This document shows positions 5,012-51,786 of a stretch of 64,000 bases of DNA, piece by piece. Source of the DNA: Prasinococcaceae sp. CCMP 1430 (taxonomy: Eukaryota > Plantae > Prasinodermophyta); the NCBI GenBank assembly GCA_013416795.1, contig RQSC01000032.1, positions 1 through 64,000 of the forward strand, read 5' to 3'. The notes beneath the pieces are model-generated. The model did no database searches. It was not told the DNA's origin and saw nothing but the letters and a program-made list of their open reading frames with translations. A program made the position numbers and the translations under genes. The first letter of the stretch is position 1. Each line of letters opens with the position of its first letter.

Positions 5012-5397
5012 TGACGGGCCGCGGGCTAGGCCTCGATGTAGGCGTGCGCGTGCAGGAGGCGCGCACGCGCGTCCCTCGACGCGTGCGGGTGCGCGCACGC
5101 GCGTGGAGGGTGTGTGTGTGTGGGGGGGGGGGGGCAGTGCGCGCGCCGTGCACCGCCACGCAGTGCCGTGAGCGCGCGCTGTAGGGTACGCGCGCAAGCG
5201 GCGCTGCTAGAGACGAGCGGGCGAGAGCAACGGTCGAAAAAACCACGGCGGGGATTCGGTGCGCGGCGGGCGCCGGCGTGTGGCAAGCGTATGTCGGCGG
5301 CGCCGCCGCTGGGGCGCCACAAGGCGCGCGCGCCCAGAGCGAGCGCCAGGGGCGGGGATAGGAGGGGGGTGGAGGTTCGCCGGGGCGCGGCGCGGCA

Positions 5398-7040
5398 ATG
5401 CCCGACCGACGGCCCGGGGTCAGCCGCGGCGCGCCGCTCTGCCGGTACTTCGCGCAGGGCCGCTGCCGCTCGGGCGCGTCGTGCCCGTTCCGCCACGACA
5501 AGACGGCCGACCCGTGCCTCGAGGTGTGCCGCTTCTACCTGCGCGGCGAGTGCGCGCACGGCAACAAGTGCCGGTACAGGCACACCAAGCCAGCGGCAGC
5601 CGCCGCGGCGCCGCCGGCGCGGCGCGCACCGGTGCGCCTAGCCGCCGCCGCGCGCTCGGCGCACGCAGCCGCAAGCATCGCGGGCGCGCACGGGGAAGGA
5701 GGGGGAGGGAGGGCGAGCGTCGCGATGGCGGATCGGCGCGGCGGAGAGGGTGCGCCCCCCTGGCGCCGCGCGCCCCGCGCGCGCAGTGGCTTGCCCCGCC
5801 CCAAGTGCTCTCGCCAGCCCGCTCTTTTTCCACCATCGACTCGTCCCTTACGGTACCGCCCCGCTCGCGCTGCCCGGCGGCTGCTGGCGGCTGCGTGCGC
5901 CAGCCACATCGCGCGCACGGGGGAACGAGCATGCCAAGACGGCGCGCACCGGTGCGCCTCGTGCCGGCGGCGCCGCTGGGCGTCGCCGACCTCGCAGAGG
6001 CCCTGCCCCCGGTGCCGGCGGGTGGCGCTGGTGAGGGCGCCTCGGCGACGGCCGACGACGACCGGCCGCTGTGCTCCCTGTACGCGAAGACAGGCGCGTG
6101 CGAGCGCGGTGAGGCGTGCCCGTTTGTGCACGGCGACACGTGCCCTCGCTGCGGCCTGCCGTGTCTGCACCCGTCACCAGCACGCGCCGCCGAGCGGGAA
6201 CAGCACGAGGCAGAGTGCGCGGCGCGGCACGAGCGCGCCAAGGCCATCCGCGACTCGCGAGACGTCGAGTGCTCCATCTGTCTGGAGAAGGTACTGTCGG
6301 ACCACTCGGGCGGGCTCGACACGTCCGACGGCGGCACGCAGCCTGACCCGAGCTACACGGCCAAGAAGTTCGGGCTCATGGAGGTGAGGGGAGCGGCATG
6401 AGCGCGGCTGTTGCGAGCGCGCCGCATCGCTGTCGTGGTGGGTGGTGCGCTGACACGCGCATTTTTCTCCTGCGCTCGCGCACGCCTGCGCGCGTCCTCC
6501 GGCGGCCGCCCTCTCACAGGCGTGCGACCACCCCTTCTGCCTGTCGTGCATCCGGCAGTGGCGCGGCGGCGATGCTGACAAGGGCCAGGCGCGCACGTGT
6601 CCGCTGTGTCGCACGCGCTCGAACTACATCGTGCCCTCGGCAGTGTGGCCGCGCGATGCCGACGAGAAGGCTGCGCTCATCGCCGAGTGGAGAGGGCGAT
6701 TGGCGAGCATCGACTGCATGCACTGGCGGATGGGCGAGGGGACGTGCCCCTTCGGTGAGTTGTCGCGCGAGGATCGGACGACACGAGCTCGCGAGTGCCC
6801 GGTAGCGCCGCCTGATGCCAAGATTTGCCGCGCTCGTGCTGACGCGGCTGCCGCCTCTCGAACTGCGCGCGCCTGTGCTCGCGCGCGCCAGGCGGCTCGT
6901 GCTTTTACCGCCACGCGTACCCCGATGGCTCGCTGCAAGACCGAAGCAAGTCCGTGCGCTTCGTGACAGTGGGCGACGACGATGGCACCGGCCACATCGT
7001 GGCAGCGCCGAGGCTGTGCGACTTCCTCGGCCTGCCGTAG
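5398..7040 (+). CDS. MKRN: Makorin-family RING E3 ubiquitin ligase with CCCH zinc fingers, 4 exons
   Basis: CRYFAQGRCRSGASCPFRH, CRFYLRGECAHGNKCRYRH, a third CCCH finger, the makorin Cys-His motif CPRCGLPCLHP, RING CSICLE..CDHPFCLSCIRQW..CPLCR and a final GTCPFGGSCFYRHAYPDG. Introns are at about 5632-5903, 6384-6519 and 6756-6891. Confidence 0.93.
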
Positions 7041-7205
7041 TCTCTATGTAGTAATCTCCTGTATATTAGTTGTAACATATGGTGTGTGCGGGGGCTCGGT
7101 GCACGGACGGCCGCCGCCGCATAGAGCACAGAAAGAGCACGCCGGCGCGAGCACCGCCCCCAGCGCGTGGCGACGCGCCGCAGCGCGATTTCAGCGACCA
7201 AGAGA

Positions 7206-8198
7206 TCACTGTCCATCGAGCGCATCTATTTCCAAGAGCTCTGCCTCCGTGAGTTTCAGATCGGCGGCGGCCAGCGAGGTCCGCATGTGCGCCGGATTCG
7301 TGCTGCGGGGGATGACGGCCATGCCGCGCTGCAAGGCCCACGCGAGCGTCACCTCGGCGGCACCGACGTCGCCGTGCGCCTTGCCTATGCGCACGAGCGT
7401 CGGGTGCGCAAGCACTGGGTTGCTGCCCCGTTTGTGTATGTGCTGCGTCCCAAGGACTGAGTACGCCTGGTAGACGGCACCGATGCGCTCGGTGGCTGCG
7501 CGCGTCGAGCGGTCCTGGTGCAGGGGATCCGCCCAGTTCTGCACGACGTGCGGGCCCTCGCGTGCGAAGTTACCGAGCTCTTCGAGGTCACTCGGCCAGA
7601 AATTGGAGACACCAATGGCGCGGAGCTTGCCCTGCGCGTACGCCTCCTCGAGTGCGCGCCAAGAATCGCGCCACGTGCCCTGCTCGACGTGGTCGCGGCC
7701 GCACAGGTCGCCCCAGCAGCGAGGATAATGCAGCAGCATAAGGTCGAGATAGCTCGTCTGAAACTGCTGCAACGACCGCTCGACGGCTCGCAACGCGGTC
7801 GAGTAGCCGTGGTCGCGGGGATGTATCTTCGTCGTGATCCACACGTCTTCGCGCTTCGCACCGCTCGCGCGCAGGCCCTCCGCGACGAGGTCCTCTCGAT
7901 ACCACTCGTACGCCTGCGCTGTGTCCAGGAGCGTGTAGCCTATGCTGAGCGCCGACTCGACAGCGGCTCTGCAGTCCCCGCCCATCGCAGCCGTACCGAG
8001 GCCAATCGCCGGCATGAGCAAGCCGTTCGAGAGGCGTATGACAGAGGTACCGTCGCTCGCGCGCTCGCGCGCGAGCTCACCGCCCCACCCCACGAACGCT
8101 TCCTCGAGTTCTTCCCCGCCGGAGAGCTGCGGCGCGCCCAGCGCGCACGCGGCGAGCGCCGCCGCCGCCAACAGCCGGCACGCCCGGCGAGCGATGCG
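7206..8198 (-). CDS. Aldo-keto reductase (AKR superfamily), 5' end uncertain (N at 8199)
   Basis: MPAIGLGT, LLDTAQAYEWY (catalytic Asp/Tyr), WITTKIHP (Lys), YLDLMLLHYP, GKLRAIGVSNF and VIPRSTNPAHM. Confidence 0.9.
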   Translation of the reverse strand, partial: RIARRACRLLAAAALAACALGAPQLSGGEELEEAFVGWGGELARERASDGTSVIRLSNGLLMPAIGLGTAAMGGDCRAAVESALSIGYTLLDTAQAYEWYREDLVAEGLRASGAKREDVWITTKIHPRDHGYSTALRAVERSLQQFQTSYLDLMLLHYPRCWGDLCGRDHVEQGTWRDSWRALEEAYAQGKLRAIGVSNFWPSDLEELGNFAREGPHVVQNWADPLHQDRSTRAATERIGAVYQAYSVLGTQHIHKRGSNPVLAHPTLVRIGKAHGDVGAAEVTLAWALQRGMAVIPRSTNPAHMRTSLAAADLKLTEAELLEIDALDGQ

Positions 8199-8439
8199 NC
8201 TCGCGGTGACTAAGCGCGCTGCCGCTGCCGAGCGCTCGTCTGACGCCCGCGCCACCTCCCCGCCTCGCTCTGTAGGTGCCGGTGCGATGGGAGCTGTCGC
8301 TCGCGTTCGTGGACGCGGCAGGCACGGTGCGCCCCCTACCTGCGGCACGCCATCGAAGGGCGCTGCTCGACGCTGAGAAGCTCATCTTCCGAACTGACGC
8401 CGCCGCGCGCGTCGAGGGCTGGACGAGGTCTCGCAGGCC

Positions 8440-9315
8440 ATGTCCGAGTGGGGCTTCTTCAATGCGAGCGGCCACGGCGTGGACGCGCGCATCGCCGCGC
8501 GCTTCGAGGCGGCACAGCGGGCATTCTTCGCGCTGCCCAAGGAGCACAAGACGCGCGTGAAGCGCCAGGCGGACAACTCGCGCGGCTGGTTTGATGACGA
8601 GCTCACGAAGCAGAAGCTCGATTGGAAGGAGTGCTTCGACTTCGGCGCGCAGGATGGTCACCTCGACGGGCGCTCGGATGTGGATGGGTACAACCAGTGG
8701 CCGGCCGAGCCCGCCGATTTCCGCGTCGCATGCGAAGAGTACTACGCGGAGGCCTTCGCGCTGGCCACCGACCTGGCGGCCGCGGCAGCGCTCTCGCTCG
8801 GCCTGGCCGAGGGCTACTTTGACGCGTGCTTCGAGAAGCACACGAGCTATTTGCGCTCAAACTGGTACCCCCTGTGCCCGGACACGTCCGCCAACCTCGG
8901 GATCGAGCGCCACACGGACGCGGGCTTCCTCACCGTCCTCATGCAGGATAGCGTGAGCGCGCTGCAGGTGTTCCACGACGGTGAGTGGACGCTTGTACCT
9001 CCCGTCGAGGGGGCATACACCATCAACGTCGGCGACCAGCTCCAGGTCTTCAGCAACGACCGGTACCGCGCCGCGTTGCACCGCGTGCTGGCATCGGAGG
9101 ACGCGGAGCGATTCTCCGCGCCCTTCTTCTTGAACACGAGCTACGGCACGGACGCGCTCCCCGTGGGCGTCGCAGACGAGGACGCGCTCTACTCGCCCGT
9201 GAATTGGGGCGACTTCCGGAGGCGGCGCTTTGAGGGTGACTTCAGCGACCAGGGCGAGGAGGTGCAGATTGCACACTTCCTCAAGGCCGGCGCCGCTTCC
9301 CGTGCGGGGCAGTGA
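8440..9315 (+). CDS. 2-oxoglutarate/Fe(II)-dependent dioxygenase (DIOX_N + 2OG-FeII_Oxy, IPNS/flavonol-synthase-like); upstream exon(s) are likely
   Basis: WGFF..GHGV, FFALPKEHK, ERHTDAGFLTVL (HxD), NVGDQLQVFSNDRY, LHRV and RFSAPFF (RxS). Confidence 0.92.
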   Translation: MSEWGFFNASGHGVDARIAARFEAAQRAFFALPKEHKTRVKRQADNSRGWFDDELTKQKLDWKECFDFGAQDGHLDGRSDVDGYNQWPAEPADFRVACEEYYAEAFALATDLAAAAALSLGLAEGYFDACFEKHTSYLRSNWYPLCPDTSANLGIERHTDAGFLTVLMQDSVSALQVFHDGEWTLVPPVEGAYTINVGDQLQVFSNDRYRAALHRVLASEDAERFSAPFFLNTSYGTDALPVGVADEDALYSPVNWGDFRRRRFEGDFSDQGEEVQIAHFLKAGAASRAGQ

Positions 9316-10934
9316 AGAAAACGCAGCGGCGTCATGAAGGACGGCGGCGTAACTCCGTGTGAGTGGTGCCCAGCTCGCGCGCAAGTTTTGCGCTTGGCTG
9401 CGGTGGCGAGGTGGCACATTGCTGCTGCCACCGCGGCCACGGCAGGTGCACCGAGCGGGAGGGGGCGCAACGAAGGTGTGTGTGCGGCGAAGCGTTGCAC
9501 ACACGATGTAGCACTATTGTACATAAGATCATTTGTTCCTCACAAGGTTCGTCGGCGTTGATCGTTACGGCGTAGTTTGAAGGGGGAGGGGGGGAGAGGG
9601 AGGCACAGGCACTCAAACGACACGACACGACGCTCGCCCCCCATTCGCCGCCTTACCTTTTGCGTCGTGGCGCTGCCGTGGTGGTCTTGCGTCTCTCGCG
9701 CCCAGGCTGCGCAGCTCCAGCGGGCGTGCTCGTTGCGTGTGTGGACGTCCAGCGCTCATGCACTCATGCAGCCATTCGCTCATCCACTCATGCAGCCATG
9801 CGCTCATCCTCTATCCCTCCTCCCTCGTGTGATTCGTTAGAGTCTGTCCTAGCATTGTGGCAGCGCGCGCCTCGGTCGTGTCTGGTTTGTTGTAGTGTCT
9901 GGTCTTGCTTGCCTGCGTGCCGTGCGTGAGAGCAGCGGGCGCACGCGCGCGGCAGCTTTTTCTTCTGCGCCATTTTCCGCGCGGCGAGCAAGTGCAACAG
10001 CGGCGGCGGCGGCGGCAGCTCGCACGCGCGCGCGCGTGATATCCCCAGGGAGGCTGTAGTATCCGCGTGTTCAAAGGTTTGTGGCGGCAGGAACGCACTC
10101 GTGCTGCGGGCTGCGTGCGCGAGCAAAGCAAATGGCGCCGGCTGAACATGCCTGCAACACGCACATCGGCGTGGCCACGCACGGCACAAAAAAGGAAGAC
10201 CGGCGCGGCAGCACCCACCGAGCACGCACGCGACGCGCCCGAGCGCGCGCGGCCGCGCGTGGGCGCGCAGCAGGGGGCGTGCGCACGACACGAAGAGGTG
10301 TCAGCGACCGATCGCCACGGCGCACAAAAAAATAGTCTGCATGCGCAAGCGCAAGACACTGCAGTGTGGTGTGGTTGTGCTCCAGTCTCTCCCCTCCCAC
10401 ATGCGTTTCCCCGCCGCCGCCCTGCCGCCCCTCCTCCCGTCCACTTAGGTCACCCGCGCTCGGCGGGCGCGTTGTGGCGCCTCCCCTCCCTTCCCCCCCA
10501 CCCCCGGGCGGGCACGGCAACGCGGGGCGGGCGGCGCGGTACGGAGCGCGGCTCGCCCGCGCGTTTGTTTGTGCGGGCAGCGCACACGCACACGGAAAAA
10601 CACGTACGTGGTAGGAGCTTTTGTCGCAGCGAATATGTGGGCAGCGCATTTCCACGTCGGCACGCCGCGTGTGCCCGCGCACATTGTATGATATACCTGG
10701 CCGTCTGACGTGTGTGCTGACGCGGCCGGCGATCGTTTTCAGGCGTATCATCACACGCAACTTGCAACCTGTGTCTGAGCGGCGCGTGTTGCATGCGACG
10801 ACGAGCGACGCCACCGGTGGCGGTGGGCACTACACAGAGCGAGGGGCGCCAGCAGGAGGCGCTAGCGGCGCACGGGAAGGCGCTGCGAATCGAGCACGCC
10901 GCGCTGGTCGTCACAGAGTCACGGCCCATTGCCA

Positions 10935-12119
10935 TTACGACGGCGGGGAATAGTGCGTCGGCCACGAAGATGGCACAATGTCATTCTCGAAGAACGGCAG
11001 GTACGTGTCTACGAGGCTGTGCGGGCCACGGAAACCGCTAAGCAGTGGGAAGCTGCCGAGCGCGTCGTCTGAGTCATCGCTAGTGTGAAGCACCGGCGCG
11101 TCTTTCCACCGAGTGTCGATGTACATCTGCTGGGCTCCGTGGGCGTAATTGTTCGACCAAGTAGACGGATTGTACGGGTACACCTGTGGGGGCAGGTGCG
11201 TTATCTTGTCGCCCTTGTTGACGACTCGCAGCTTGTCGAAGGGCTGCGCATCCAGATACTGTGCGAATTGTTCACCGCCAAGGCGAGGCTGTCCAATCGT
11301 CACGAGCGAGAGCGGCAGGCCATCCACCGCATCGACAAGCTCCTTGCTCAGCCCTTGCTCGACAGCCCCTGGCTTCTGCGCGGCGTTCAGCCTGAGCGCG
11401 CAGAGAGTAGCCATCACTCCGCCGAGCGAGTGCCCCGTCATAAGCACGCGCCAGCCTGGGCCTGCGTATGCCTTGCACACTGCGGCGATCTGGTGCTCTA
11501 GGTCAGGTTGAACCGAGAAATAGCACTCGCGCCACCCCCGATGCACAAAAGAGGGATCCTCTGCCGCGGCGTCGCCGATCTCCAGGGGCGTGCGAGAGCG
11601 CAAGCCTTGCCAGATGCTAATGAACCAGTCTGTAAGACTCTCCGAGCCCACGAAAGCGACGACAACGCGTTTCCTGCTCGGAGAGATGAGAACTGCGCAC
11701 TCTGTGTCGTACTTCTTAGAACAGATGAGCTGGAAGTTCCTGGCCATTTCATCACCGTCTGGAGGCAAGACGAGGTCGTACTTCTCCTGAGCTTCGCGCA
11801 CGGCCTCTTTCAGCTCCTTGCCGAAGGTGGCAGCAGCTGTGGCGGACGCGCCGTTGGGCGGGGAGCCGAGCAGCGCAGTGCTCTGCGGGGTTGACAGATC
11901 TTCAGCTTTGCACAGGTCCACGTCCGAGCCCTCGTTGCTCTCGTATTGATACATGAGCAACGATGCGCGGCACGCGAGTCGTGTGTCCTCAAGCGTCGGC
12001 AGCCCGATGGCCGCATCGCCCGCGAGCCCGTGCGTGACAGTGCGGGTGCGCCTGCGTGCGGTCACTGCAGAGCCCAGCAAGAGGGCGCTGGGCCGTCGCG
12101 GTGCCACCAATGTCGTCAT
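10935..12119 (-). CDS. Class 3 lipase, probably plastid-targeted
   Basis: VAFVGSES..DW, VHRGW, VLMTGHSLGG (GxSxG), TIGQPRLG, RVVNKGDKITHLPP and H..DTY. The N-terminus is Ser/Thr/Arg-rich like a transit peptide. Confidence 0.88.
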   Translation of the reverse strand: MTTLVAPRRPSALLLGSAVTARRRTRTVTHGLAGDAAIGLPTLEDTRLACRASLLMYQYESNEGSDVDLCKAEDLSTPQSTALLGSPPNGASATAAATFGKELKEAVREAQEKYDLVLPPDGDEMARNFQLICSKKYDTECAVLISPSRKRVVVAFVGSESLTDWFISIWQGLRSRTPLEIGDAAAEDPSFVHRGWRECYFSVQPDLEHQIAAVCKAYAGPGWRVLMTGHSLGGVMATLCALRLNAAQKPGAVEQGLSKELVDAVDGLPLSLVTIGQPRLGGEQFAQYLDAQPFDKLRVVNKGDKITHLPPQVYPYNPSTWSNNYAHGAQQMYIDTRWKDAPVLHTSDDSDDALGSFPLLSGFRGPHSLVDTYLPFFENDIVPSSWPTHYSPPS

Positions 12120-41472: not shown

Positions 41473-43247
41473 ACGGCCACCTAAGAGATCAAAAGGCGCG
41501 GTCGGGTCCCTGGGGAGCGTGGACAGCGAAGGACGGCAGGGCGGGACGTTGCGCAGCGCGCGGGCGCCGTCACGCGACGAAAGGAGAGAGTGTCAGCGCA
41601 CCAGCCGCAGCGCCAGCGCCGGCCAGGCCTGTAGCACTTGACCCGAGCGACGCGCCGTGGGTAGCATGGTTCGCCGCACCGCGCACACAGCCAGGCAGCC
41701 GCGCGAGCGGGCCGAAGCATGCACGCGCGCTCGCGTCCTCGCCTCGGCGAGTGCGCGCTAGCGCACCGCAGCAGGGCGCTGGGCGCGAGCGCCTCAGGGA
41801 GCCGCGCCCTCGCCCACGGGCGGGCGCCCTCGCGCGGAGACGTACATGCCACCAACCGTCGCGCCCCGAAGCGTCCGTGGGCCCAGGTGTCCGCCGCCGG
41901 CCCCTTTGCCTCGGCGCCCGATGCCGTCGCGTCCCGAGACTCGCGCGGCCGCCGCGCCCTCTTCCCCCCTCCTTCCCGGCCTCCCGGAGGCCCTGCCGGC
42001 TCGGCCGGCCCTGTCTCGCGCTCTCGTGCGCTGCTGTGGCACCCCGCCTCGCCGCGCGAGCCCGGTCGCCCTTTCTTCCGCCGCGTCCGCCGCGCGCGCA
42101 CGCCAGGCCCCGAGCGCGGGCGGGACGCGCGCGCTCTGGCCGCGAGCGCAGCGCGCACGGCAGACAGCGAGGCGTGGGCGCAGCGGCGGGGTGGGGTGGG
42201 GGGGAAGCGGGCTCCGGGCTGCTGGGCGAGCCCCTTTGCTTTGCACATTGATCTCCGCGGAGCAAAGCGCGTCGCGTTTGGTCGCGTTTGCGTTGGTTGG
42301 GGGACTCGAGCGAAATATGATTCCGTGCAATTGCCAATTGGCGCCGCGCAACCTGCCGCTGCGGCGCTCTCGCCGCCCGCGCACCCCAAAGGGGGGGGGG
42401 GGAGGAGGGGGGAGGGGGGGGGGCGATCGCGGGGGAGGCCTCTCTGCGGAGGCCTCGGATGGGAAGGGAGGGGGGCAGGCCAACAGGCAAACCCCCTCAG
42501 GGGCGTGCTGAGGTGGGGCGCGCAGCCCGCGCGCGCCTGGACGCCCGCGTCCCCCTTCCCTTGGCCGCGCGCCCGCCGCCCCCCCCCGGCGGCGCGGCGC
42601 GCGCCGGCGAAAGCGCCCTTCCGCACAACGAAACCGCTCCTTTGCCCTTTTTTTTCACGTCCGCCGGGTCCCCTCCGGAAGAGACAGAGAGACACGCCGC
42701 CGCCGCCGCGGCGGGGGTGCGCTCGCCGGCTGTGCCGCGTCCCCCGAAACGCATGCGAAATCGCCATCAAAATCTTTAGTCGCCCGTGGTTTAATCATAT
42801 ATNTGCGCGCAGCATCAGCGACACGGCATGCGCGCGCGCGCGCGCTCGCGCAGCGGCAGCGAAACGGCATGCGCGGCGCGGGGCACGCGCTCTGCTGCGC
42901 AATCGCCTGCGCCGCCGTCATATGGGGTTCGGGCATCCTCGGCATCCACGGCGCCTGCTGCATTGGATCGAGTGGCTCCCAGGCGCCGCCGTGGAGGCGC
43001 GCGCGCGCGGCGGCCGCCAATTGCAGATTTGTTGTCCCTTCAGATGACGGTAAGAGACGGTTAAGCGTGATCGGTGACGTCCCTCCTGCGTGCAGTGGAG
43101 TGGATGGATGGGGTTTACCGGGCAATGCGCCGCGCCGCCGGGGCGCGCGCCGTGTGGGCGGCAAGGCAAGCGCGCGCGATGTGCGCGGCGTGAGGGACGC
43201 CTACGCCACACCTCCACACGCGCCCACCACCACCCTCTCACAGCACG

Positions 43248-46200
43248 ATGGGACCCGTGGTGCCGAACCCCCCCTTCGATTCGACGCTGCGCGACGAGGA
43301 CCTGGAGGCGGTGCGGAGCAGCGCGGACGCGGACGGGCGCCTGAGCGGCGCGGCCGTGGAGGCGCTCGCGGACTTCCAGACGACGTGCCGCAACCTGGGG
43401 TGCGACGCGCTGGATGAGGCCAAGTTCTGCGAGCTGCTTGATGGCATCGGGTACTCCGTGGGCGCCGGCACTGGGGAGGTGGCGGACGCCAAGACGCTCT
43501 TCGCGGACATGATCGCCATGGTGAGCGCCGTGGCGGGCAGGAAGGTCGAGGTGCTGGACGTGGAGGCCATGAAGTCGCTGTACGCCTCCACTCCGTACTG
43601 CGGGGTGGACGAGGGCGCCAACACCGGCTCCGCGCTGATCGCGTACGTGCAGGAGCTGTTCGAGGAGTTTGACAAGGACGGCAGCGGCGGCATCGACTCC
43701 ACTGAGTGCCGCCAGCTCATCGAGTCCATGCTCGGCGAGGACGACGCGAAGGAGCTGCTCGGCGGCGCCTTCGACATCGACGCCTTCGTCGCCTCGATGG
43801 ATCAGGACGGCGACGGCAACATCAGCCGGGAGGAGCTCTGCGCCGGCCTGCTCAAAATCAAGCAGGAGCGGTACGTCGCGCCGCTGCCGCGCGACTTCAA
43901 CGTGGCCCTCATGGACCCAGCCATCGCGCTCGCGGACCGATTCTGCGCCGTGCTCGGCGAGTGGGTGAACGACCACGAGGCGATGCGCCACCACTTCCTG
44001 TCCAACCTGCAGACGGGCGGCTACGGCTCCAACGCCAAGCGGCTCATCGTGCAGTTCCTCACGGCATACCACCGCTTCAGCACCAACTTCCGCGGCTACG
44101 TCGACGCGGTGCGCGCGCTAGTGCCAGAGGCCGAGGCGGTGCTGATGGAGAACCATGACGAGGAGTGCGGCCGGTACGACAGCGCCATGCTCGCCGAGCT
44201 GCGCAGCGCGGGCATCGATCCGGCGAGTGTAGACGGTGTGCCGCATGACGAGCTCTTTAAGCGCACGATCGACGCCATCGGCGCCAAGTTCGGCGGCATC
44301 ACGTGCGACGACGCGGCGCTGGCCGCGGAGGCCATCGCGCCGCTCATCGAGGCGTTCGAGACGCACGTGGTGAACAAGAGCACGGCGAGCGCGGCGAGCG
44401 CCGTCGGCGCGCTGCTGTTCGGCTCCGAGAACGTCGTGCCCAGGATGTACAAGACGTTCTACGACATCATCCAGGGCGAGGACGCGGAGGGGGCGCTGAC
44501 GAAGGACGACCTCGCCTTCTTCACGCTGCACATGGACATGGACCAGGACCACGCGGCGAAGCTGCTGGGCGTGGCGGAGACGCTGGGCCAGCGGCGCAGC
44601 GGGCGCGAGGAGATGATGCGCGCGGCGCAGGACGTGATGGAGGCACGCATCAAGGTGTACGAGAACGTGATCCGCCTCGCGCTGCATGTGGAGGGCGACG
44701 ACAAGGCGGGCATGGGCGCTGACAAGCTGTACGACGCGCAGAGCGGCAACTGGAAGCGCACCAAGCCGACGTGCCTCAGCGACTTCACTGGGCGCCCGGT
44801 CGTGTTCGAGACGTGCAAGCCCTTCGTGCAGGGCGCCAACGTGCTGGACCTAGGGTGCGGCGAGGGGTACGTCGCGCGCAAGCTGATGGAGATGGGCGCC
44901 GAGTCCGTGGTCGGCGTCGACGTCAGCGAGAGCATGGTGGCGTCGGCGGAGGCGAACAAGGTGAGCAGCAAGGAGAGCTACGTGCAGGGCAACTGCGCCA
45001 CCGTCCGCAGGACGCTGATCGAGTCGCCGTCAGCCATGGGGGTGATGCCGGGGGCGGACCTGGAGACGGGCCCCTTTGGCCTGGCCGTCGGCTGCTTCGT
45101 GTTCAACTACGTCTCGATCAGCGAGATGCGCAGCACCATGGAGGACGTCTTTCGCCTGCTCAAGCCCGGCGGCACCTTCGTGTTCAGCGTGCCGCACCCG
45201 TTCATGCTCCTGCAGAACAGCGGCGACGACCAGACGTTCGGGTTCCGCACCAACGGCGAGGACGTCACCGGCTCATACTTTTCCCTGCGGGATCGCGCCT
45301 TCGGCGGCACCATCAAGACGACGGCCGGGACGGGGCTGAACGTGAAGATGAACTTCAAGACGCTGGATGACTACACGCGGATGCTCACCGACCTGGGCTT
45401 CACCATCTCCGGCATGCAGGAGGCGCGCGTGCTGCCTGAGCACATGCGTGAGAACAAGGCGTTCTTCGACAGCGTGAAGGACGTGCCGCTGCACCTGGTG
45501 TTCAGCGCGACCAAGCCCGTGGAAAGCAGCACCATGGGTAGCAGCAACGTGCTGGACCTCCTGCCGAAGAAGATCCTGTGGAACAAGATTGCGACCAACA
45601 ACCCGGTCCAGTCGTTCGTCATGCCCTTCCCGTCGGACGCGCGGGAGGAGCTCACCGCGGTGTGCCTGCGGTGCTACGACCAGGGCATCGGCGCGGACGA
45701 CTTCGAGATGAACGTGCACGCGCGGGTGAGCGAGATGCAGGCTGTTGCGGAGCACGCCGCGCTGGTCCGCTCGCGCCTGCTCAACGACGTGGGCGCCATC
45801 CTCGTCCGCGGGCTCGACATGGAGCGGTTCGGCGGCCTGGCGAACCTCGAGAAGATGACACACTGTTCCAAACTGGCGTACTACATTTATTCGAGCTTCA
45901 TGGGACAGGTGGACGCGGGGGCGCGCGGGCGCCTCTTCGACGTGAAGAGCGCCAACCTGGACGTCAAGGCGGACAACGTGCTCTTCAGCGTGTCCGACAC
46001 GGAGGCGGGGTGGCACACGGATGGCGCCTCGAAGGACCGCGTGTACGACGTGGTGAGCCTGCTTTCCATCGTCAAGGCGAGCTCGGGCGGCGAGTTCCGC
46101 ATCGCCAACGGCGCGAACGCGCTGGAGGAGCTCAAGCTCCGCCTGCCCAAGTTCATGATGTACGAGCTGCTCCGCCCCATCCCGCGCGACGTGCTGGAGA

Positions 46201-46604
46201 ACGGCAGCGGGAAGGGCGCCGCGGGCATCGCGATGAAGCTGTCGCGCAGCGAGCACCTGCTGGCGAAGCGCATCAAGTACAACTCGTACCCCATCTTCGT
46301 CGACAGGGGGGAGCGGATGCGCTTCCGCTACATGCGCTTCTGGATCGAGACTGCGCACCGCAAGGTGAACTGGCCCATCTCGCCGCTGCTCAAGGTGGGC
46401 ATGGACCTGCTGGATGAGGAGCTCGACAACTCGTGCTGCTTCAACGAGAGCATGGAGCCGGGCGACATGATTTACGACAACAACATGATCGTGGCGCATG
46501 CGCGCAACGCCTTCAAGGTGGCCGACGGCCAAGCCCCGCGCCACAAGGTGCGCGCCTGGCTCCAGATCCAGAAGGCCGAGCTCCTGGCCAACGGCTTCAA
46601 GTGA
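43248..46604 (+). CDS. Multidomain enzyme: 2x EF-hand + heme-oxygenase-like diiron oxidase (HDO; CADD/TenA/PqqC fold) + class I SAM methyltransferase + TauD/TfdA-like Fe(II)/2OG dioxygenase
   Basis: EF loops DKDGSGGIDSTE and DQDGDGNISREE; HDO ligands ENHDEECG, PHDELF, GSENVVP and HMDMDQDH; MT motifs VLDLGCGEG, VGVDVS and RLLKPGG; TauD motifs GWHTDG and PGDMIYDNNMIVAHAR. Single exon with a strong GC3 bias. Confidence 0.88.
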   Translation: MGPVVPNPPFDSTLRDEDLEAVRSSADADGRLSGAAVEALADFQTTCRNLGCDALDEAKFCELLDGIGYSVGAGTGEVADAKTLFADMIAMVSAVAGRKVEVLDVEAMKSLYASTPYCGVDEGANTGSALIAYVQELFEEFDKDGSGGIDSTECRQLIESMLGEDDAKELLGGAFDIDAFVASMDQDGDGNISREELCAGLLKIKQERYVAPLPRDFNVALMDPAIALADRFCAVLGEWVNDHEAMRHHFLSNLQTGGYGSNAKRLIVQFLTAYHRFSTNFRGYVDAVRALVPEAEAVLMENHDEECGRYDSAMLAELRSAGIDPASVDGVPHDELFKRTIDAIGAKFGGITCDDAALAAEAIAPLIEAFETHVVNKSTASAASAVGALLFGSENVVPRMYKTFYDIIQGEDAEGALTKDDLAFFTLHMDMDQDHAAKLLGVAETLGQRRSGREEMMRAAQDVMEARIKVYENVIRLALHVEGDDKAGMGADKLYDAQSGNWKRTKPTCLSDFTGRPVVFETCKPFVQGANVLDLGCGEGYVARKLMEMGAESVVGVDVSESMVASAEANKVSSKESYVQGNCATVRRTLIESPSAMGVMPGADLETGPFGLAVGCFVFNYVSISEMRSTMEDVFRLLKPGGTFVFSVPHPFMLLQNSGDDQTFGFRTNGEDVTGSYFSLRDRAFGGTIKTTAGTGLNVKMNFKTLDDYTRMLTDLGFTISGMQEARVLPEHMRENKAFFDSVKDVPLHLVFSATKPVESSTMGSSNVLDLLPKKILWNKIATNNPVQSFVMPFPSDAREELTAVCLRCYDQGIGADDFEMNVHARVSEMQAVAEHAALVRSRLLNDVGAILVRGLDMERFGGLANLEKMTHCSKLAYYIYSSFMGQVDAGARGRLFDVKSANLDVKADNVLFSVSDTEAGWHTDGASKDRVYDVVSLLSIVKASSGGEFRIANGANALEELKLRLPKFMMYELLRPIPRDVLENGSGKGAAGIAMKLSRSEHLLAKRIKYNSYPIFVDRGERMRFRYMRFWIETAHRKVNWPISPLLKVGMDLLDEELDNSCCFNESMEPGDMIYDNNMIVAHARNAFKVADGQAPRHKVRAWLQIQKAELLANGFK

Positions 46605-46911: not shown

Positions 46912-49829
46912 CTACTTGAGCACGACGCCGCTGGTGATCTTCCAGGCCTGGGCGTCCGCAAACCATTCCATCACGTAGCGCGCCTTGTAGGTCGCCTTGT
47001 AGCTGTCGGTCAGATCGGGCTTCCCGCCGTCGAAGAGCGCCGCGCTCTCCTCGAGCGTGCAGTCGACGGTGGCGACCGCGCCGTTGTTGCGCATCGACAC
47101 CTTGTCCACCTGGACGTTTATCAGCTCGTAGTTCCAGTGCCAGCCGCTCTCCAGCGATTCCTCCGCCCGCTCGCGCCATTGCTGCAGCATCTCTCCAGCC
47201 AGGATCTGCGGCAGGCCGCTGAGGTCGTGTTGCCCCCCGAGAGCCATGGCCTTCACGCTCTGCCACCGGCGCAGGAGGCGAGCCGCGAGGGGGCCGTCCA
47301 TGCGCTGCAGCGGCTTTGCGCCGGGCTCCTCAGCAGGCTTGGCCTTGGCGCTGCCCGCGCTCGCGCTGCTCCCGGCTACCGCCTTGCTGCCACTCGACGC
47401 GAGGGGTTTCACCGCATCCTTCGCGGCGCTGGCTGCGTTGCCCGCCGCGCTGGCCGCGTTGCTCGCCGCGCTGGCCAGTCCATTGATCGGAGCGAGCGCG
47501 AGCGCGCCCACAGTCTGCGCTGCGACGGCAGGGTCGCGCAGGGGCGTGCGCGGCACCACGACGACACCGGCGCACACGAGAGCCCCGACCGCGACGAGCG
47601 TCAGCGGGTTCGCCTTTACCGCCTTCCTCGCCTTCCTCTGCTCGCGAATCCGTGCGCGGATGGCGTCAACTGATTCCAGGTCGTCAAACTGTCCGCCTTC
47701 GGCACGGTCCTCCTGCTCGGCGATGTCCCACTGCGTCGCAGCCTCGGCGCTCTCACTGACGGCGGGCACGGGCATCGAAGCCACCTCACCGGCCGCGACC
47801 TTGCGGGTCGCCTCCATGCGCTCCTCGTAGACCGGAAACTTGGCCTTGCGAGCAGCCTCCTGGCGCGCGACGTACCCCGGCACCTTGCCCTTGTTGGCAG
47901 CGCGCGCGGCCTTGCCAGCCACCGAATCTGTGGCGGCGCCAGACTTGTCAGAAGGCGGGCTCGGCGGGAGCACAGGCGGCGGGCTCGGCGGCGGGCCCGA
48001 GGGCGGGCGCGGAAGAGGAGGCACGAGCGGCGGGGGCACAGGCAGGGCAGGAGGCTGCGCCTCATCGCCCATCCGCGGGCCAGCAGCAGCCGACAGCTCC
48101 GACGACGCGACCGTCTGCTCGTCGACTTTGGCGGGCTGCTGCTGGCCTGTAACGGGCTGCGCCTGGCGCTCTGACGTACCCTCAGAGTCAGCCGACGCTA
48201 TCGGCAGTGCTTGCCGGATGGGACCCTTGCGCTCGCGCGCAGCGTCCGCGGTGGCCCGCGCGGCCGTTGCCGGCGTCGGCGCTGGCTTGCCCTTGAAAGA
48301 ATCCTTCACCCGTGCCAGCCCCTGCCTGACCGCGTACCACGACCTCTGTGAGAGGCGGCCAAGCGACTTCTTCGCCGCGCCCACCGGCCCCAACTCGAGT
48401 CGCTCGAGGTCCCGCCGCACGCCCTCGTCGTCGAAGTAGTCGTTGAGCAGGCCGCGCTCACCGGCAGTGTCCCTGAAACGCGCGAACACGGCCTCCGTCA
48501 GCCAGCGCTCCGCGAGGCGGCACAGGCCGAGCAGGAACTCGTCATCGTCCTCGGAGTGGCTCATGACAAACTGTGCCGCTGGGCTGCGCCGGATTGGTGC
48601 TCCATCGGGGGCGACGTCCAGCTGCAGGAAGTTGCGCGCTTTCGCGGGCTCGCCCAGCAGGAGGGTGCACATGGCGCGCTCGAGCGTGACGTCGCCAGGC
48701 ACCTGCGTTCCCTTCGATCCCGCGGGCGCCCTCGCGGCCGACGCCGGCGTCGCCTGGTTGGCCTGTCGCGCTTGCTCCGCCTGTATTTCGGCGAGCAGCC
48801 TGTCGGCTTCAAGGACGAGCCTCGGCTCGCGAGATCTGAATCCGCAGGCAACGTTGGCCAGAGCGGCGGTGTACAGCTCCTCCAGAGTCAGGGCTGGGCT
48901 CGGAGGCGTAGCGGCGAAGATGTCGACGAGCTCACGGGTGGTCATGTGGGCATACGCGGCCGCCTTGAAGCGCCACAGGTCGGGCGGGCCCGCGCTGGTA
49001 CCAGTCTTCGCGGCGCCCGCCGCCGCAGCTGCGGTGATCGCTCCCTCGCGCGACCACAGCAGGTCGCGCAAGCCCTTCAGCCCCCGATCGCGGTTGTGCC
49101 GGTTGTCCTCGCCGATGGGCAGCGCCAGCAGCTCGATCACGTTGCGCGGCTTCATCTCCGCCAGGGTCGTGTCGATGGCGTCGAGGAGGCGTGGGGCGAG
49201 CGAGGTGCCGCCGTGCTCCCGCAGCAGGTGCGCGGCGTGCTCCAGCTGCTCGCACCCGCCGACGACGTCGGGCGGGCGCGCACCCATGGCGACGCGGCCG
49301 AGGTCGCATCGCGCCAGCGCCATGCACACGGCCACGTCGGAGGCGATGGCTCGGCCGGCGCGTCCGCGCATCGCCTCCTCGCCAACCTGGAGCACCACCT
49401 CCTCTTCTCCGGCCTCCTGGAGCAGACTGAGCACGCCTGGCACCAAGCGCAGCGGCACCTCCTGCACCAGCCCGTCGGCGTCGGCTCCCTCCTTGAGGCC
49501 GCGCGCGTAGATGTCGCGGGTGCTCCCGTTGCCGAGGATGCCCGCTACGACGCGCAGCACCTCGAGCCGCGCGTCGAGCGCGTTGGCGCTCAGCCCCTCG
49601 GCGGGCGCCGCCGCCAGGCGCTCCTCGTAGCACCTGGCCACCGATGCGCTGCTCATCGCCGTGCGCAGGCCGAGCACGGCGAAGAAGTTCATCGGCACGC
49701 TCACGCAGCGCTCCTCGGGCCCGGCGGCGAAGGCCGCGCCCGATGCGGCCGCGATCGCGGTCGCCACCGCCGCGGCCATCGCCTCGCCCTGCGGGTCGTC
49801 GCTGGCGGCCTCGCCCCCGACGGCCGAGG
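46912..49829 (-). CDS. ARC6: Chloroplast division protein ARC6 (Ftn2 homologue); 5' end lost in the gap
   Basis: J-like domain (VPMNFFAVLG..RLEVL..A..L....R..Y), VPGVLSLLQEAGE, DV..MALA.CDL, LAPRLLDAID.TL, ERAMCTLLLGE, GLCRLAERWL, a TM segment and the C-terminal DUF4101 region (WQSVK..ALG..HD...L..IL.GEML.QW). Confidence 0.92.
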
Positions 49830-50613
49830 NNNNNNNNNNNNNNNNNNNNNNNNNNNNNNNNNNNNNNNNNNNNNNNNNNNNNNNNNNNNNNNNNNNNNNN
49901 NNNNNNNNNNNNNNNNNNNNNNNNNNNNNNNNNNNNNNNNNNNNNNNNNNNNNNNNNNNNNNNNNNNNNNNNNNNNNNNNNNNNNNNNNNNNNNNNNNNN
50001 NNNNNNNNNNNNNNNNNNNNNNNNNNNNNNNNNNNNNNNNNNNNNNNNNNNNNNNNNNNNNNNNNNNNNNNNNNNNNNNNNNNNNNNNNNNNNNNNNNNN
50101 NNNNNNNNNNNNNNNNNNNNNNNNNNNNNNNNNNNNNNNNNNNNNNNNNNNNNNNNNNNNNNNNNNNNNNNNNNNNNNNNNNNNNNNNNNNNNNNNNNNN
50201 NNNNNNNNNNNNNNNNNNNNNNNNNNNNNNNNNNNNNNNNNNNNNNNNNNNNNNNNNNNNNNNNNNNNNNNNNNNNNNNNNNNNNNNNNNNNNNNNNNNN
50301 NNNNNNNNNNNNNNNNNNNNNNNNNNNNNNNNNNNNNNNNNNNNNNNNNNNNNNNNNNNNNNNNNNNNNNNNNNNNNNNNNNNNNNNNNNNNNNNNNNNN
50401 NNNNNNNNNNNNNNNNNNNNNNNNNNNNNNNNNNNNNNNNNNNNNNNNNNNNNNNNNNNNNNNNNNNNNNNNNNNNNNNNNNNNNNNNNNNNNNNNNNNN
50501 NNNNNNNNNNNNNNNNNNNNNNNNNNNNNNNNNNNNNNNNNNNNNNNNNNNNNNNNNNNNNNNNNNNNNNNNNNNNNNNNNNNNNNNNNNNNNNNNNNNN
50601 NNNNNNNNNNNNN
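49830..50613. other. Assembly gap (784 N)
   Basis: A run of N that hides the 5' ends of both ARC6 and the cysteine protease. Confidence 1.
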
Positions 50614-51786
50614 GGCCGGCGCGCGCGCCGCGCCGGCGGCGGCCGGCGGCGCATTCGCGCGGTACTGCGCCGAGCATGGCAAGGCGTACGGCGACCCCGC
50701 CGAGTACGAGCTGCGTCGAAGCCTCTTCGAGCGCCGAGCGGCTGCGGTGGTCGCGCACAACGCCGCGCGTGCCGCGTCGCACACGCTCAGCGTGAATCAC
50801 CTCTCGGACTGGACCGAGGACGAGCTCAGGGGTCTCACTTCTGGCTACAAGCGGGACGACTTTGAGGCGCTCCCGACCCAGGTGCCCTTCGACGAGGCCG
50901 AGTTCGAAGGCGATGACTTCGAGCTGCCCGAGGAGTTCGACTGGCGCGACGCACAGCCCTCCGTCGTGACGGTGTGTGGCGCCCCCTCGCGACGCGCGAG
51001 CGCCCGTCCGCCCCCGCTCGTGTGCTGACCCCCACCCGCGCCGCGTCGCAGGCTGTTAAGAATCAAGGGCACTGCGGGTCCTGCTGGGCCTTCTCGGCGA
51101 CGGAGACGCTCGAATCGGCCGTGGCGCTCTCAGGAGGGGGAGAGCTGTTCAATGCGTCCACGCAGGAGTTCGTCAGCTGCGTGCGAAACAAGCTCGAGTG
51201 CGGTGGCACCGGCGGCTGCGGCGGAGCGACGGCCCGCCTCGCTTTTGACTGGGCTGTGTCGAACGGGATCACGCCCGAGGGCTTGTATCCGTACACGCAG
51301 ACGACCGGCACGTGCGAGACCGCGAAGCTCGAGCCCAAGGCGGGGATCACGGGTTTCGTCGCGCTGCCGCGCAACAAACCCAACCATCTCGCCAGGGCTC
51401 TCGTAAAGCACGGCCCGATCAGCGTCACAGTTGCCGCAGCGCGCTGGGCGCCCTACGGAGGCGGCGTCTACAACGACACAGACGAGTGCGGGTTCGACCT
51501 AGACCACTTGGTCCAGCTCGTGGGGTACGGCACCGACGCGGCCACAGGCCAGCGGTACTGGACGATAAGGAACTCATGGGGTCCGACGTGGGGGGAGGGT
51601 GGCTACATACGTCTCGCGCGCGAGGCTGAGGGCGACGAGCCCGCGGAGGGCGTCGATACCTCACCGCAGGAAGGCTACACCTGCAAGGGTGGACCCGCGA
51701 ACATAACCGTCAAAGGCGTGTGCGGCCTTTATTCCGACAGCGCGTATCCGACCGGCGCGTACATGAAGACCAAGGCCCAAGCGTGA
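50614..51786 (+). CDS. Papain-family (C1A) cysteine protease with I29 propeptide; 5' end in the gap; intron 50972-51051
   Basis: ERFNIN-like prodomain, VNHLSDWT, FDWRD, VKNQGHCGSCWAFS, DHLVQLVGYG and YWTIRNSWG; the catalytic Cys/His/Asn are intact. Confidence 0.93.

Follow-up and report, generated by a model that had tools for sequence, protein, structure and literature searches.

What might an alga make with three enzymes and a calcium sensor joined in one polypeptide chain? The question is raised by a gene in the first 64,000 nucleotides of contig RQSC01000032.1 (assembly GCA_013416795.1) of Prasinococcaceae sp. CCMP 1430, the stretch referred to here as the window. From N- to C-terminus the protein combines an EF-hand pair, a diiron oxidase of the heme-oxygenase-like type (HDO), a class I S-adenosylmethionine (SAM) methyltransferase (MT) and a TauD-like oxygenase that depends on Fe(II) and 2-oxoglutarate (2OG). 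A preliminary description of the window had named these four modules in this order, and did so correctly according to Pfam and to the positions of the motifs it quoted. Based on comparison with bacterial, cyanobacterial and algal relatives we conclude that the gene is very probably the fused form of a conserved bacterial HDO-MT-TauD operon with a swappable sensor.

The gene is complete (Table 1). Its start codon is the first ATG after an in-frame stop lying 18 codons 5', and the translation runs over 1118 codons with neither a stop, nor an X, nor a frameshift. With GC contents of 0.63, 0.41 and 0.95 at the three codon positions nearly all codons end in G or C, and from base composition only some 3e-7 open reading frames (ORFs) of this length would be expected in the window by chance. 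As the ORF and its homologues align end to end no intron is required, and thus the single intronless ORF with G/C-ending codons that had been described before is upheld. A scaffold gap at 49830-50613, 3.2 kb downstream, and a single N at 42803, 445 nt upstream, might suggest that the gene is an assembly chimera or a pseudogene. The ORF itself, however, contains no N, a copy from an independent assembly (P0001, 1118 aa, on a 6.5-kb contig) is 99% identical, the 90%-identity cluster of this copy holds 15 more variants of 1118 aa from other assemblies, and diatom transcriptomes of the MMETSP collection contain full-length single transcripts of the same architecture (P0008, P0244). The copies of identical length from other assemblies argue against a chimeric join, which had been considered as a possible pitfall, and altogether an artefact or pseudogene is extremely improbable.

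Table 1. Features of the fusion gene, in window coordinates.
Feature	Position	Strand	Evidence
Complete single-exon gene, 1118 aa + stop codon	43248-46604	+	ORF listing; end-to-end alignment to homologues
N-terminal region, aa 1-130, no Pfam match, no canonical EF loops	43248-43637	+	Full-length alignment
EF-hand pair, aa 134-199	43647-43844	+	Pfam EF-hand_1/6/7; calmodulin matches in PDB
Canonical 12-residue EF loops, aa 142-153 and aa 185-196	43671-43706; 43800-43835	+	D/N/S at positions 1, 3, 5 and E at 12
Heme-oxygenase-like diiron oxidase domain, aa 216-485	43893-44702	+	Pfam; profile vs PDB; model + Foldseek; invariant ligands
HDO ligands E306, H333, E394, H428, D432, H435	44163, 44244, 44427, 44529, 44541, 44550	+	Alignments
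Family-specific insertion between ligands Glu306 and His333	44172-44243	+	Profile + family alignments
Class I SAM methyltransferase domain, aa 486-760	44703-45527	+	Pfam; profile vs PDB
Invariant CLSDFTGRP; motif I	44772-44798; 44841-44867	+	
TauD/clavaminate-synthase-like Fe(II)/2OG oxygenase domain, aa 770-1118	45555-46601	+	Pfam; profile vs PDB; model + Foldseek
TauD residues H923-x-D925, H1084, R1098, R1102	46014-46022, 46497, 46539, 46551	+	Full-length + deeper domain alignments

The sensor module gives an EF-hand_1 match in two stretches (2.3e-11), and as both loops fit the canonical pattern, Ca2+ binding is predicted; the two EF-hand loops claimed at about 43670-43840 are thus confirmed by Pfam and by their positions. 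The region is related to the EF domain of the cyanobacterium Brasilonema (BLASTP 6e-8). In the full-length alignment the preceding residues 1-130 face the first of the EF-hand pairs in the calmodulin-like domain of cyanobacteria and are probably a degenerate N-lobe.

HDOs carry an E-H-E-H-D/E-H ligand motif, perform N-oxygenation or C-C cleavage and require an auxiliary external reductant (PMC11363339). The algal HDO domain is recognised by Haem_oxygenas_2 (PF14518, aa 285-467, E 2.6e-9), its AlphaFold model is all-helical (pLDDT 93), and all six ligands occur without exception in 15 full-length and 26 domain homologues, i.e. the full ligand set attributed to the domain beforehand holds. Among PDB sequences the HDO profile matches CADD best (6e-13), followed by BesC and HamA, and Foldseek places the model next to CADD, Npun_F6505, HamA, PqqC, UndA, BesC, HrmI and PolF, with a TM-score of 0.8 to CADD normalised to the length of CADD. 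An NCBIfam scan gave only generic sub-threshold matches overall, with a weak one to the CADD model. The unusual insertion between the first Glu and His ligands that had been noticed earlier is real and comprises about 17 residues relative to Nostoc-type HDOs and about 24 profile positions relative to CADD. It is found in the alga, in the cyanobacterial fusions, in Bacteroidota, in PVC bacteria (here Planctomycetota, Verrucomicrobiota and Kiritimatiellia) and at the H-NOX-linked loci L094 and L010 described below, it is absent from Nostoc HDOs, Waterburya HDOs and CADD, and, as judged from the alignments, it is a signature of the HDO family shared by fusion and operon.

The MT is the best conserved module, with a mean column identity of 54%. 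Eight Pfam methyltransferase models pass their curated cut-offs; Methyltransf_25 matches aa 532-642 (E 1.1e-13), class I methyltransferase models span aa 527-658, and D534, G536, G538, E539 and G540 of motif I are invariant in the 15-sequence full-length alignment. Both the SDFTGRP signature and the glycine-rich motif I of the preliminary description are therefore corroborated. The nearest PDB sequences are ToxA (7e-21), 3g5l and 3bkw. In the TauD domain (PF02668, aa 834-1104, E 2.4e-16) the triad H923/D925/H1084, R1098, which has the spacing of the 2OG-binding arginine, and R1102 are invariant in the full-length as well as in deeper domain alignments. Its profile matches FrbJ (5e-21), TtnM (6e-10) and then BBOX, VioC and CmnC, and its model (pLDDT 90) has NapI, FrbJ, VioC, CmnC, TtnM, AsnO, KDO1/5 and OrfP as Foldseek neighbours, with E-values of 1e-15 to 1e-12 for NapI, VioC, FrbJ and AsnO. 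Many clavaminate-synthase-like oxygenases, e.g. NapI, VioC, CmnC, OrfP and KDO, have Arg, Lys or other free amino acids as substrates, whereas FrbJ is a phosphonate hydroxylase with an N-acetyl-N-hydroxy phosphonate as substrate. FrbJ and VioC/NapI/CmnC/OrfP share the fold, the HxD...H triad, the 2OG arginine and the second arginine (R-x3-R) with the algal domain, but only 14-18% of the residues are identical. A word-indexed search with the TauD domain by itself brought up no stand-alone homologue that was informative, all matches being fragments or close relatives from within the family. Pfam, PDB profiles and Foldseek thus all recover the HDO and TauD folds, the HTD...H-x-R signature of a TauD/TfdA-type dioxygenase is borne out by Pfam, model and invariant residues, and all three catalytic modules are intact; they would use SAM, O2 at a dimetal site, and O2 together with Fe(II)/2OG, respectively.

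We scanned GTDB with one genome per species, which yielded 159 relatives, the 80 best of them being retained, and added 80 metagenome loci by a scan with an alignment of bacterial MTs. In Bacteroidota, Planctomycetota, Verrucomicrobiales and Kiritimatiellia residues ~242-1107 of the algal protein are covered by separate genes. Among the best 80 of the 159 relatives, 19 bacterial species genomes outside cyanobacteria have separate, overlapping genes in the order HDO-MT-TauD, and both HDO and TauD lie beside the MT, usually flanking it, in 66 of the 80 metagenome loci. At L009, for example, stops and starts overlap in a row of genes for GNAT, HDO (7974-8711), cupin, MT (9484-10233), TauD (10237-11205) and a FAD/NAD/2Fe-2S reductase, and ORF maps of 17 further loci mostly display three coupled genes HDO-MT-TauD (exceptions: L015, L073). 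Ferruginibacter (L016) already combines HDO and MT in one fused gene. The domains of the algal protein follow one another as the genes do in the operon, which makes this a classic case of fusion of functionally linked genes. The idea that a bacterial three-enzyme pathway had been fused into one polypeptide, for which a search of bacterial neighbourhoods had been suggested, is hence well founded, the operon being present in Bacteroidota, Planctomycetota, Verrucomicrobiota and Kiritimatiellia.

An all-against-all clustering of the flanking ORFs revealed no convincing recurrence beyond GNAT, cupin, FNR-like reductase, H-NOX with kinase, and a putative cyclase. The FNR-like reductase of the Bacteroidota operons fits the need of HDOs for an auxiliary reductant (PMC11363339). 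The cupin of these operons matches only generic Cupin_2 proteins in the PDB (oxalate decarboxylase, gentisate dioxygenase) and not SznF, so that this gene lends no support to an SznF-type rearrangement. Class III aminotransferases, present at four loci, were dismissed as linked genes, their mutual identity of 26-29% and variable distance indicating coincidence, and MmgE/PrpD and nitroreductase genes were dismissed as recurrent neighbours as they are restricted to close relatives. The nitroreductase-family gene has two domains and directly adjoins TauD at L151, L155, L156 and L163 (e.g. L156:7759-9273, minus strand), which are close metagenome relatives with a cupin between HDO and MT.

The fused form is not confined to the window. 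Full-length relatives with 37-44% identity occur in Skeletonema, Thalassiosira exigua, Conticribra (Thalassiosira) weissflogii and many metagenomic eukaryotes, a partial one was found in the dinoflagellate Prorocentrum by a whole-protein search, and the filamentous cyanobacteria Brasilonema angustatum and Microseira have the same four modules at 32-33% identity. As the Conticribra weissflogii sequence comes from MMETSP transcriptomes, the four modules are on one transcript in a diatom, and the search of algal transcriptomes that had been proposed thus returned the very fusion. An exhaustive HMMER search gave 108 clusters (50% identity) with E < 1e-30, about 20 representatives of which have at least 800 aa; among 10 long family representatives there was no other domain architecture, and the source names of the homologues are only "hypothetical", "EF-hand domain-containing" or concatenated domain labels. 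Of the earlier suggestion that a bacterial-type pathway was fused and given a Ca2+ sensor in an alga, the fusion stands, but the addition of the EF-hands is no algal invention, given Brasilonema and Microseira. In a maximum-likelihood tree of concatenated HDO, MT and TauD, obtained by a quick search and unrooted, eukaryotes, cyanobacterial fusions, PVC and Bacteroidota each form a group with 100% SH-aLRT, and eukaryotes and cyanobacterial fusions are together on one side of the branch to PVC and Bacteroidota, again with 100% support. This topology would fit a single origin of the fused form, with transfer between cyanobacteria and eukaryotes in either direction.

In cyanobacteria the fusion gene is solitary, its neighbours being housekeeping or ion-channel genes. 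In Brasilonema (L001) the gene lies between mreBCD/ribD and two downstream TspO genes, and in Microseira sp. BLCC-F43 (L003:226-21670) it lies among genes for GDT1, Calx-beta, an Ion_trans/PKD channel, a Castor/Pollux-RCK channel and bestrophin fragments; the two neighbourhoods have no genes in common. In Microseira wollei NIES-4236 (L008:7755-11286) the gene is broken into three ORFs, i.e. the EF-hands with the start of the HDO, the end of the HDO, and MT plus TauD, the last two being ~390 nt apart, and GenBank annotates only the MT plus TauD piece. This split gene may be a pseudogene or may result from an insertion or an assembly error.

The nature of the sensor varies. At L059 (Lacipirellulaceae), L013 (Verrucomicrobiales), L083 (Kiritimatiellia) and L104 (metagenome) the HDO gene encodes an N-terminal cyclic-nucleotide-binding domain (PF00027, 4e-15 to 6e-20), and tblastn detected such an extension of the HDO gene in 16 metagenome loci. 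Thus, in the PVC group the position of the EF-hands of algae and cyanobacteria is taken by another second-messenger sensor. At L059, L100, L104 and L144, moreover, TauD is directly followed by a gene with an FHA-like N-terminus and a Guanylate_cyc match that is weak yet above the Pfam cut-off, which we regard as a putative adenylate/guanylate cyclase.

A further sensor, the haem-based gas sensor H-NOX, is encoded next to the enzymes. At L094 the genes for HDO (5147-5995), MT (5992-6747), TauD (6760-7710), H-NOX (7808-8386; PF07700, 2.5e-47) and an HNOBA-HisKA-HATPase-REC kinase (8394-10013) follow tightly on one strand. L107, L125 and L132 have the same arrangement, L127 ends within the H-NOX gene, and in a Planctomycetota metagenome-assembled genome (L010) H-NOX and kinase are transcribed divergently from the operon. 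A related MT-HDO pair is present in 57 Nostocales-type and Pleurocapsales loci; its MT shares 49-56% identity with the MT of fusion and operon, and its CADD-like HDO is ~25% identical and lacks the family insertion. In 53 of these 57 loci H-NOX is the next gene on the same strand, separated from the HDO gene by 124-471 nt in 51 of them and followed by an HNOBA kinase in most. The Nostocales cases are largely one inherited arrangement, and the Waterburya H-NOX is 57% identical. Judged across Nostocales, Waterburya and the two planctomycete arrangements, the H-NOX linkage is one that has outlasted deep divergence and rearrangement.

The H-NOX gene of Nostoc is well studied. The MT and CADD-like HDO pair that precedes it on the same strand (L071:7968-11805 and 52 other cyanobacterial loci) is not discussed in the literature that we searched, and it may bear on what Nostoc H-NOX senses. 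The Waterburya HDO ORF (L021:8792-10477) encodes 561 aa, of which HDO models match the first ~225, while the C-terminal ~330 have no Pfam match.

What, then, might the protein be for? The neighbours on the sensor side, i.e. H-NOX with its kinase, the cyclic-nucleotide-binding domain and the putative cyclase, favour signalling over an osmolyte or defence metabolite, and we consider a signalling role fairly likely. The natural-product setting assumed before is thus corrected, and an osmolyte or defence product is disfavoured, as the bacterial genes stand alone or beside these sensors in neighbourhoods without natural-product clusters. Tentatively, and with slightly less than even confidence, we propose a calcium-gated fused HDO-MT-TauD enzyme that makes a diffusible small signal, an N-oxygenated or haem-ligand product being the most likely class. 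Binding of Ca2+ to the EF-hand pair would switch the chain on; a small amino-acid-like substrate, at best guess a basic amino acid such as arginine, would be methylated by the MT at the expense of SAM, oxidised with O2 at the diiron site of the HDO and oxidised further by the Fe/2OG domain. The product would serve as diffusible signal rather than as bulk metabolite, and it would most likely belong to the N-oxygenated compounds and either act as a haem ligand such as NO itself or set one free. That the product is indeed NO or an NO donor we regard as possible but doubtful. The most far-reaching version, in which HDO-MT-TauD would constitute a non-haem-iron route to NO or a related haem-binding signal, gated by Ca2+ in algae and cyanobacteria or by cyclic nucleotides in PVC and read by H-NOX, is unlikely as a whole.

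Several points weigh against this proposal. The proposed function of the HDO-MT-TauD family is deduced from sequences and models. Several diatom homologues carry degenerate EF-hands in the alignment, and the Bacteroidota operons, with GNAT, cupin and FNR-like reductase, have a metabolic look and lack sensor domains. The H-NOX linkages of the Nostocales concern the related pair, with its distant HDO lacking the insertion, and not the same enzyme, and adjacency to H-NOX could reflect control of the enzymes by NO or redox state rather than production of the ligand by them. As to the chemistry, the TauD domain is matched best, in sequence, by the phosphonate hydroxylase FrbJ and not by an arginine enzyme, SznF is not among the PDB sequence matches of the HDO profile, for which CADD is nearest, the algal protein has no Pfam match to a cupin, the module of SznF that makes the N-N bond, and the cupin encoded separately in the Bacteroidota operons matches generic Cupin_2 proteins but not SznF.

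Could the enzymes make or do something else? The reading of the preliminary description is a biosynthetic enzyme for a specialised metabolite, e.g. an osmolyte, a defence compound, a siderophore-like hydroxamate or an N-N/N-O product, with the EF-hands only tuning flux. HDOs, MTs and Fe/2OG enzymes typically serve natural-product pathways as tailoring enzymes (PMC11705231), and the composition of the sensor-free Bacteroidota operons, the relation of the TauD domain to the hydroxylase of an N-hydroxylated phosphonate and the nitroreductase-family gene that adjoins four loci would all suit such a role. However, the surroundings of the operon in ~160 loci show no recurrent genes for a nonribosomal peptide synthetase, a polyketide synthase, a transporter or another cluster component, sensor domains are fused to or encoded beside the enzymes in four phyla, and the cyanobacterial fusion genes are solitary, so that we consider a specialised metabolite conceivable, though rather unlikely. 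Alternatively, the enzymes may respond to NO or oxidative stress, H-NOX and kinase inducing or accompanying an operon whose enzymes alter or mend a metabolite that NO or O2 has damaged. The co-orientation of H-NOX, kinase and enzymes, as in sensor-plus-effector operons, agrees with this idea, but it leaves unexplained why EF-hand and cyclic-nucleotide-binding domains are fused to the first enzyme, an arrangement that points to post-translational gating by second messengers, and we know of no NO-detoxifying chemistry that uses SAM and 2OG. An NO response is thus improbable.

Finally, the HDO unit might be a CADD-like, self-sacrificing synthase of the folate precursor p-aminobenzoate to which tailoring domains were added. 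CADD (Chlamydia CT610) is the closest solved relative by sequence and by fold, the weak NCBIfam match points in the same direction, and both CADD and the CADD-like Npun_F6505 resemble the algal HDO in fold, sequence and the ligand spacing H-x3-D-x2-H. Nevertheless, in the alignment to 1rcw the sacrificial Tyr27 and Lys152 are replaced by Leu251 and Phe404 and are not conserved in the family, on which grounds membership in the CADD-type suicide enzymes was rejected. In addition, the insertion, which CADD lacks, adjoins the metal site in the fusion/operon HDO family, and a CADD-like reaction would leave the coupling to MT and TauD unexplained, rendering this alternative very improbable.

Two known systems illustrate the proposed signal-producing enzyme. 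SznE methylates the guanidine group of arginine, the HDO domain of SznF N-hydroxylates twice and the N-nitrosourea decays non-enzymatically to NO; HamA belongs to a diazeniumdiolate pathway (PMC11705231). The SznE/SznF pair resembles HDO-MT-TauD in combining a SAM methyltransferase with an HDO of the ligand set E/H/E/H/D/H, the Bacteroidota operons even have a cupin directly after the HDO gene, and decay of the product to NO would fit the H-NOX neighbours of the operon. It differs in that HDO-MT-TauD has an additional Fe/2OG oxygenase, sensor domains and no natural-product cluster. SznF-type membership was rejected, as no cupin follows the HDO in the algal protein and a separate Cupin_2 gene occurs only in some Bacteroidota operons. 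With one defining feature each of the CADD-type and SznF-type subfamilies tested and lacking, the fusion HDO is, by these alignments and domain searches, outside both.

The second system is the animal Ca2+/calmodulin-dependent nitric oxide synthase (NOS) with its H-NOX guanylate cyclase. The logic is analogous, as a calmodulin-like Ca2+ sensor sits on an O2-dependent oxidase, and bacterial relatives of the fusion have H-NOX or cyclic-nucleotide parts adjoining the enzymes. There is no homology, however, NO_synthase, flavodoxin and FAD reductase domains being absent according to Pfam, and the likeness is a functional conjecture. A canonical NOS was rejected, as Pfam, NCBIfam and PDB gave no matches to a haem-thiolate oxygenase with flavin reductase. 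Calcium-dependent NOS-like activity has been reported in diatoms (PMC1370914); relatives of the fusion occur in centric diatoms, but we do not take this overlap as evidence for NO.

Downstream of the fusion gene, the 784-N gap falls inside a long ORF on the minus strand (46912-50784); its product carries ARC6 plastid-division domains, and the gene model crosses the gap sequence. As this gene encodes plastid-division domains the window represents nuclear DNA of a plastid-bearing eukaryote. Further N positions in the window are 1854-1865, 8199 and 18705.

Each domain of the protein is a new member of a known superfamily. As stated in the preliminary description, no characterised eukaryotic enzyme has this architecture, as far as database names and literature reveal: a full-text literature search found neither a characterised enzyme or paper with the EF-hand/HDO/MT/TauD architecture nor a paper on H-NOX-adjacent MT-HDO genes, and the searchable literature contains no description of the sensor-gated HDO-MT-TauD unit linked to H-NOX in either its fused or its operon form. 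Three familiar folds thus occur in a combination without described function that spans Bacteroidota, PVC, cyanobacteria, diatoms, dinoflagellates and a green alga. That so widespread a family swaps its sensors and is linked to H-NOX was unexpected, and the exchange of EF-hand and cyclic-nucleotide-binding domains together with the repeated adjacency of H-NOX or a putative cyclase point to a signal-producing enzyme.

NOS-like activities have long been reported in photosynthetic eukaryotes that have no NOS. If the product were NO or an NO donor, the fusion protein would put a name to an enzyme for these activities, would provide an endogenous source of ligand for the H-NOX sensors of cyanobacteria and planctomycetes, and would extend the chemistry known from HDOs. 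Even with another product, one polypeptide that carries out three steps with distinct cofactors under Ca2+ control would be an attractive target for enzymology.

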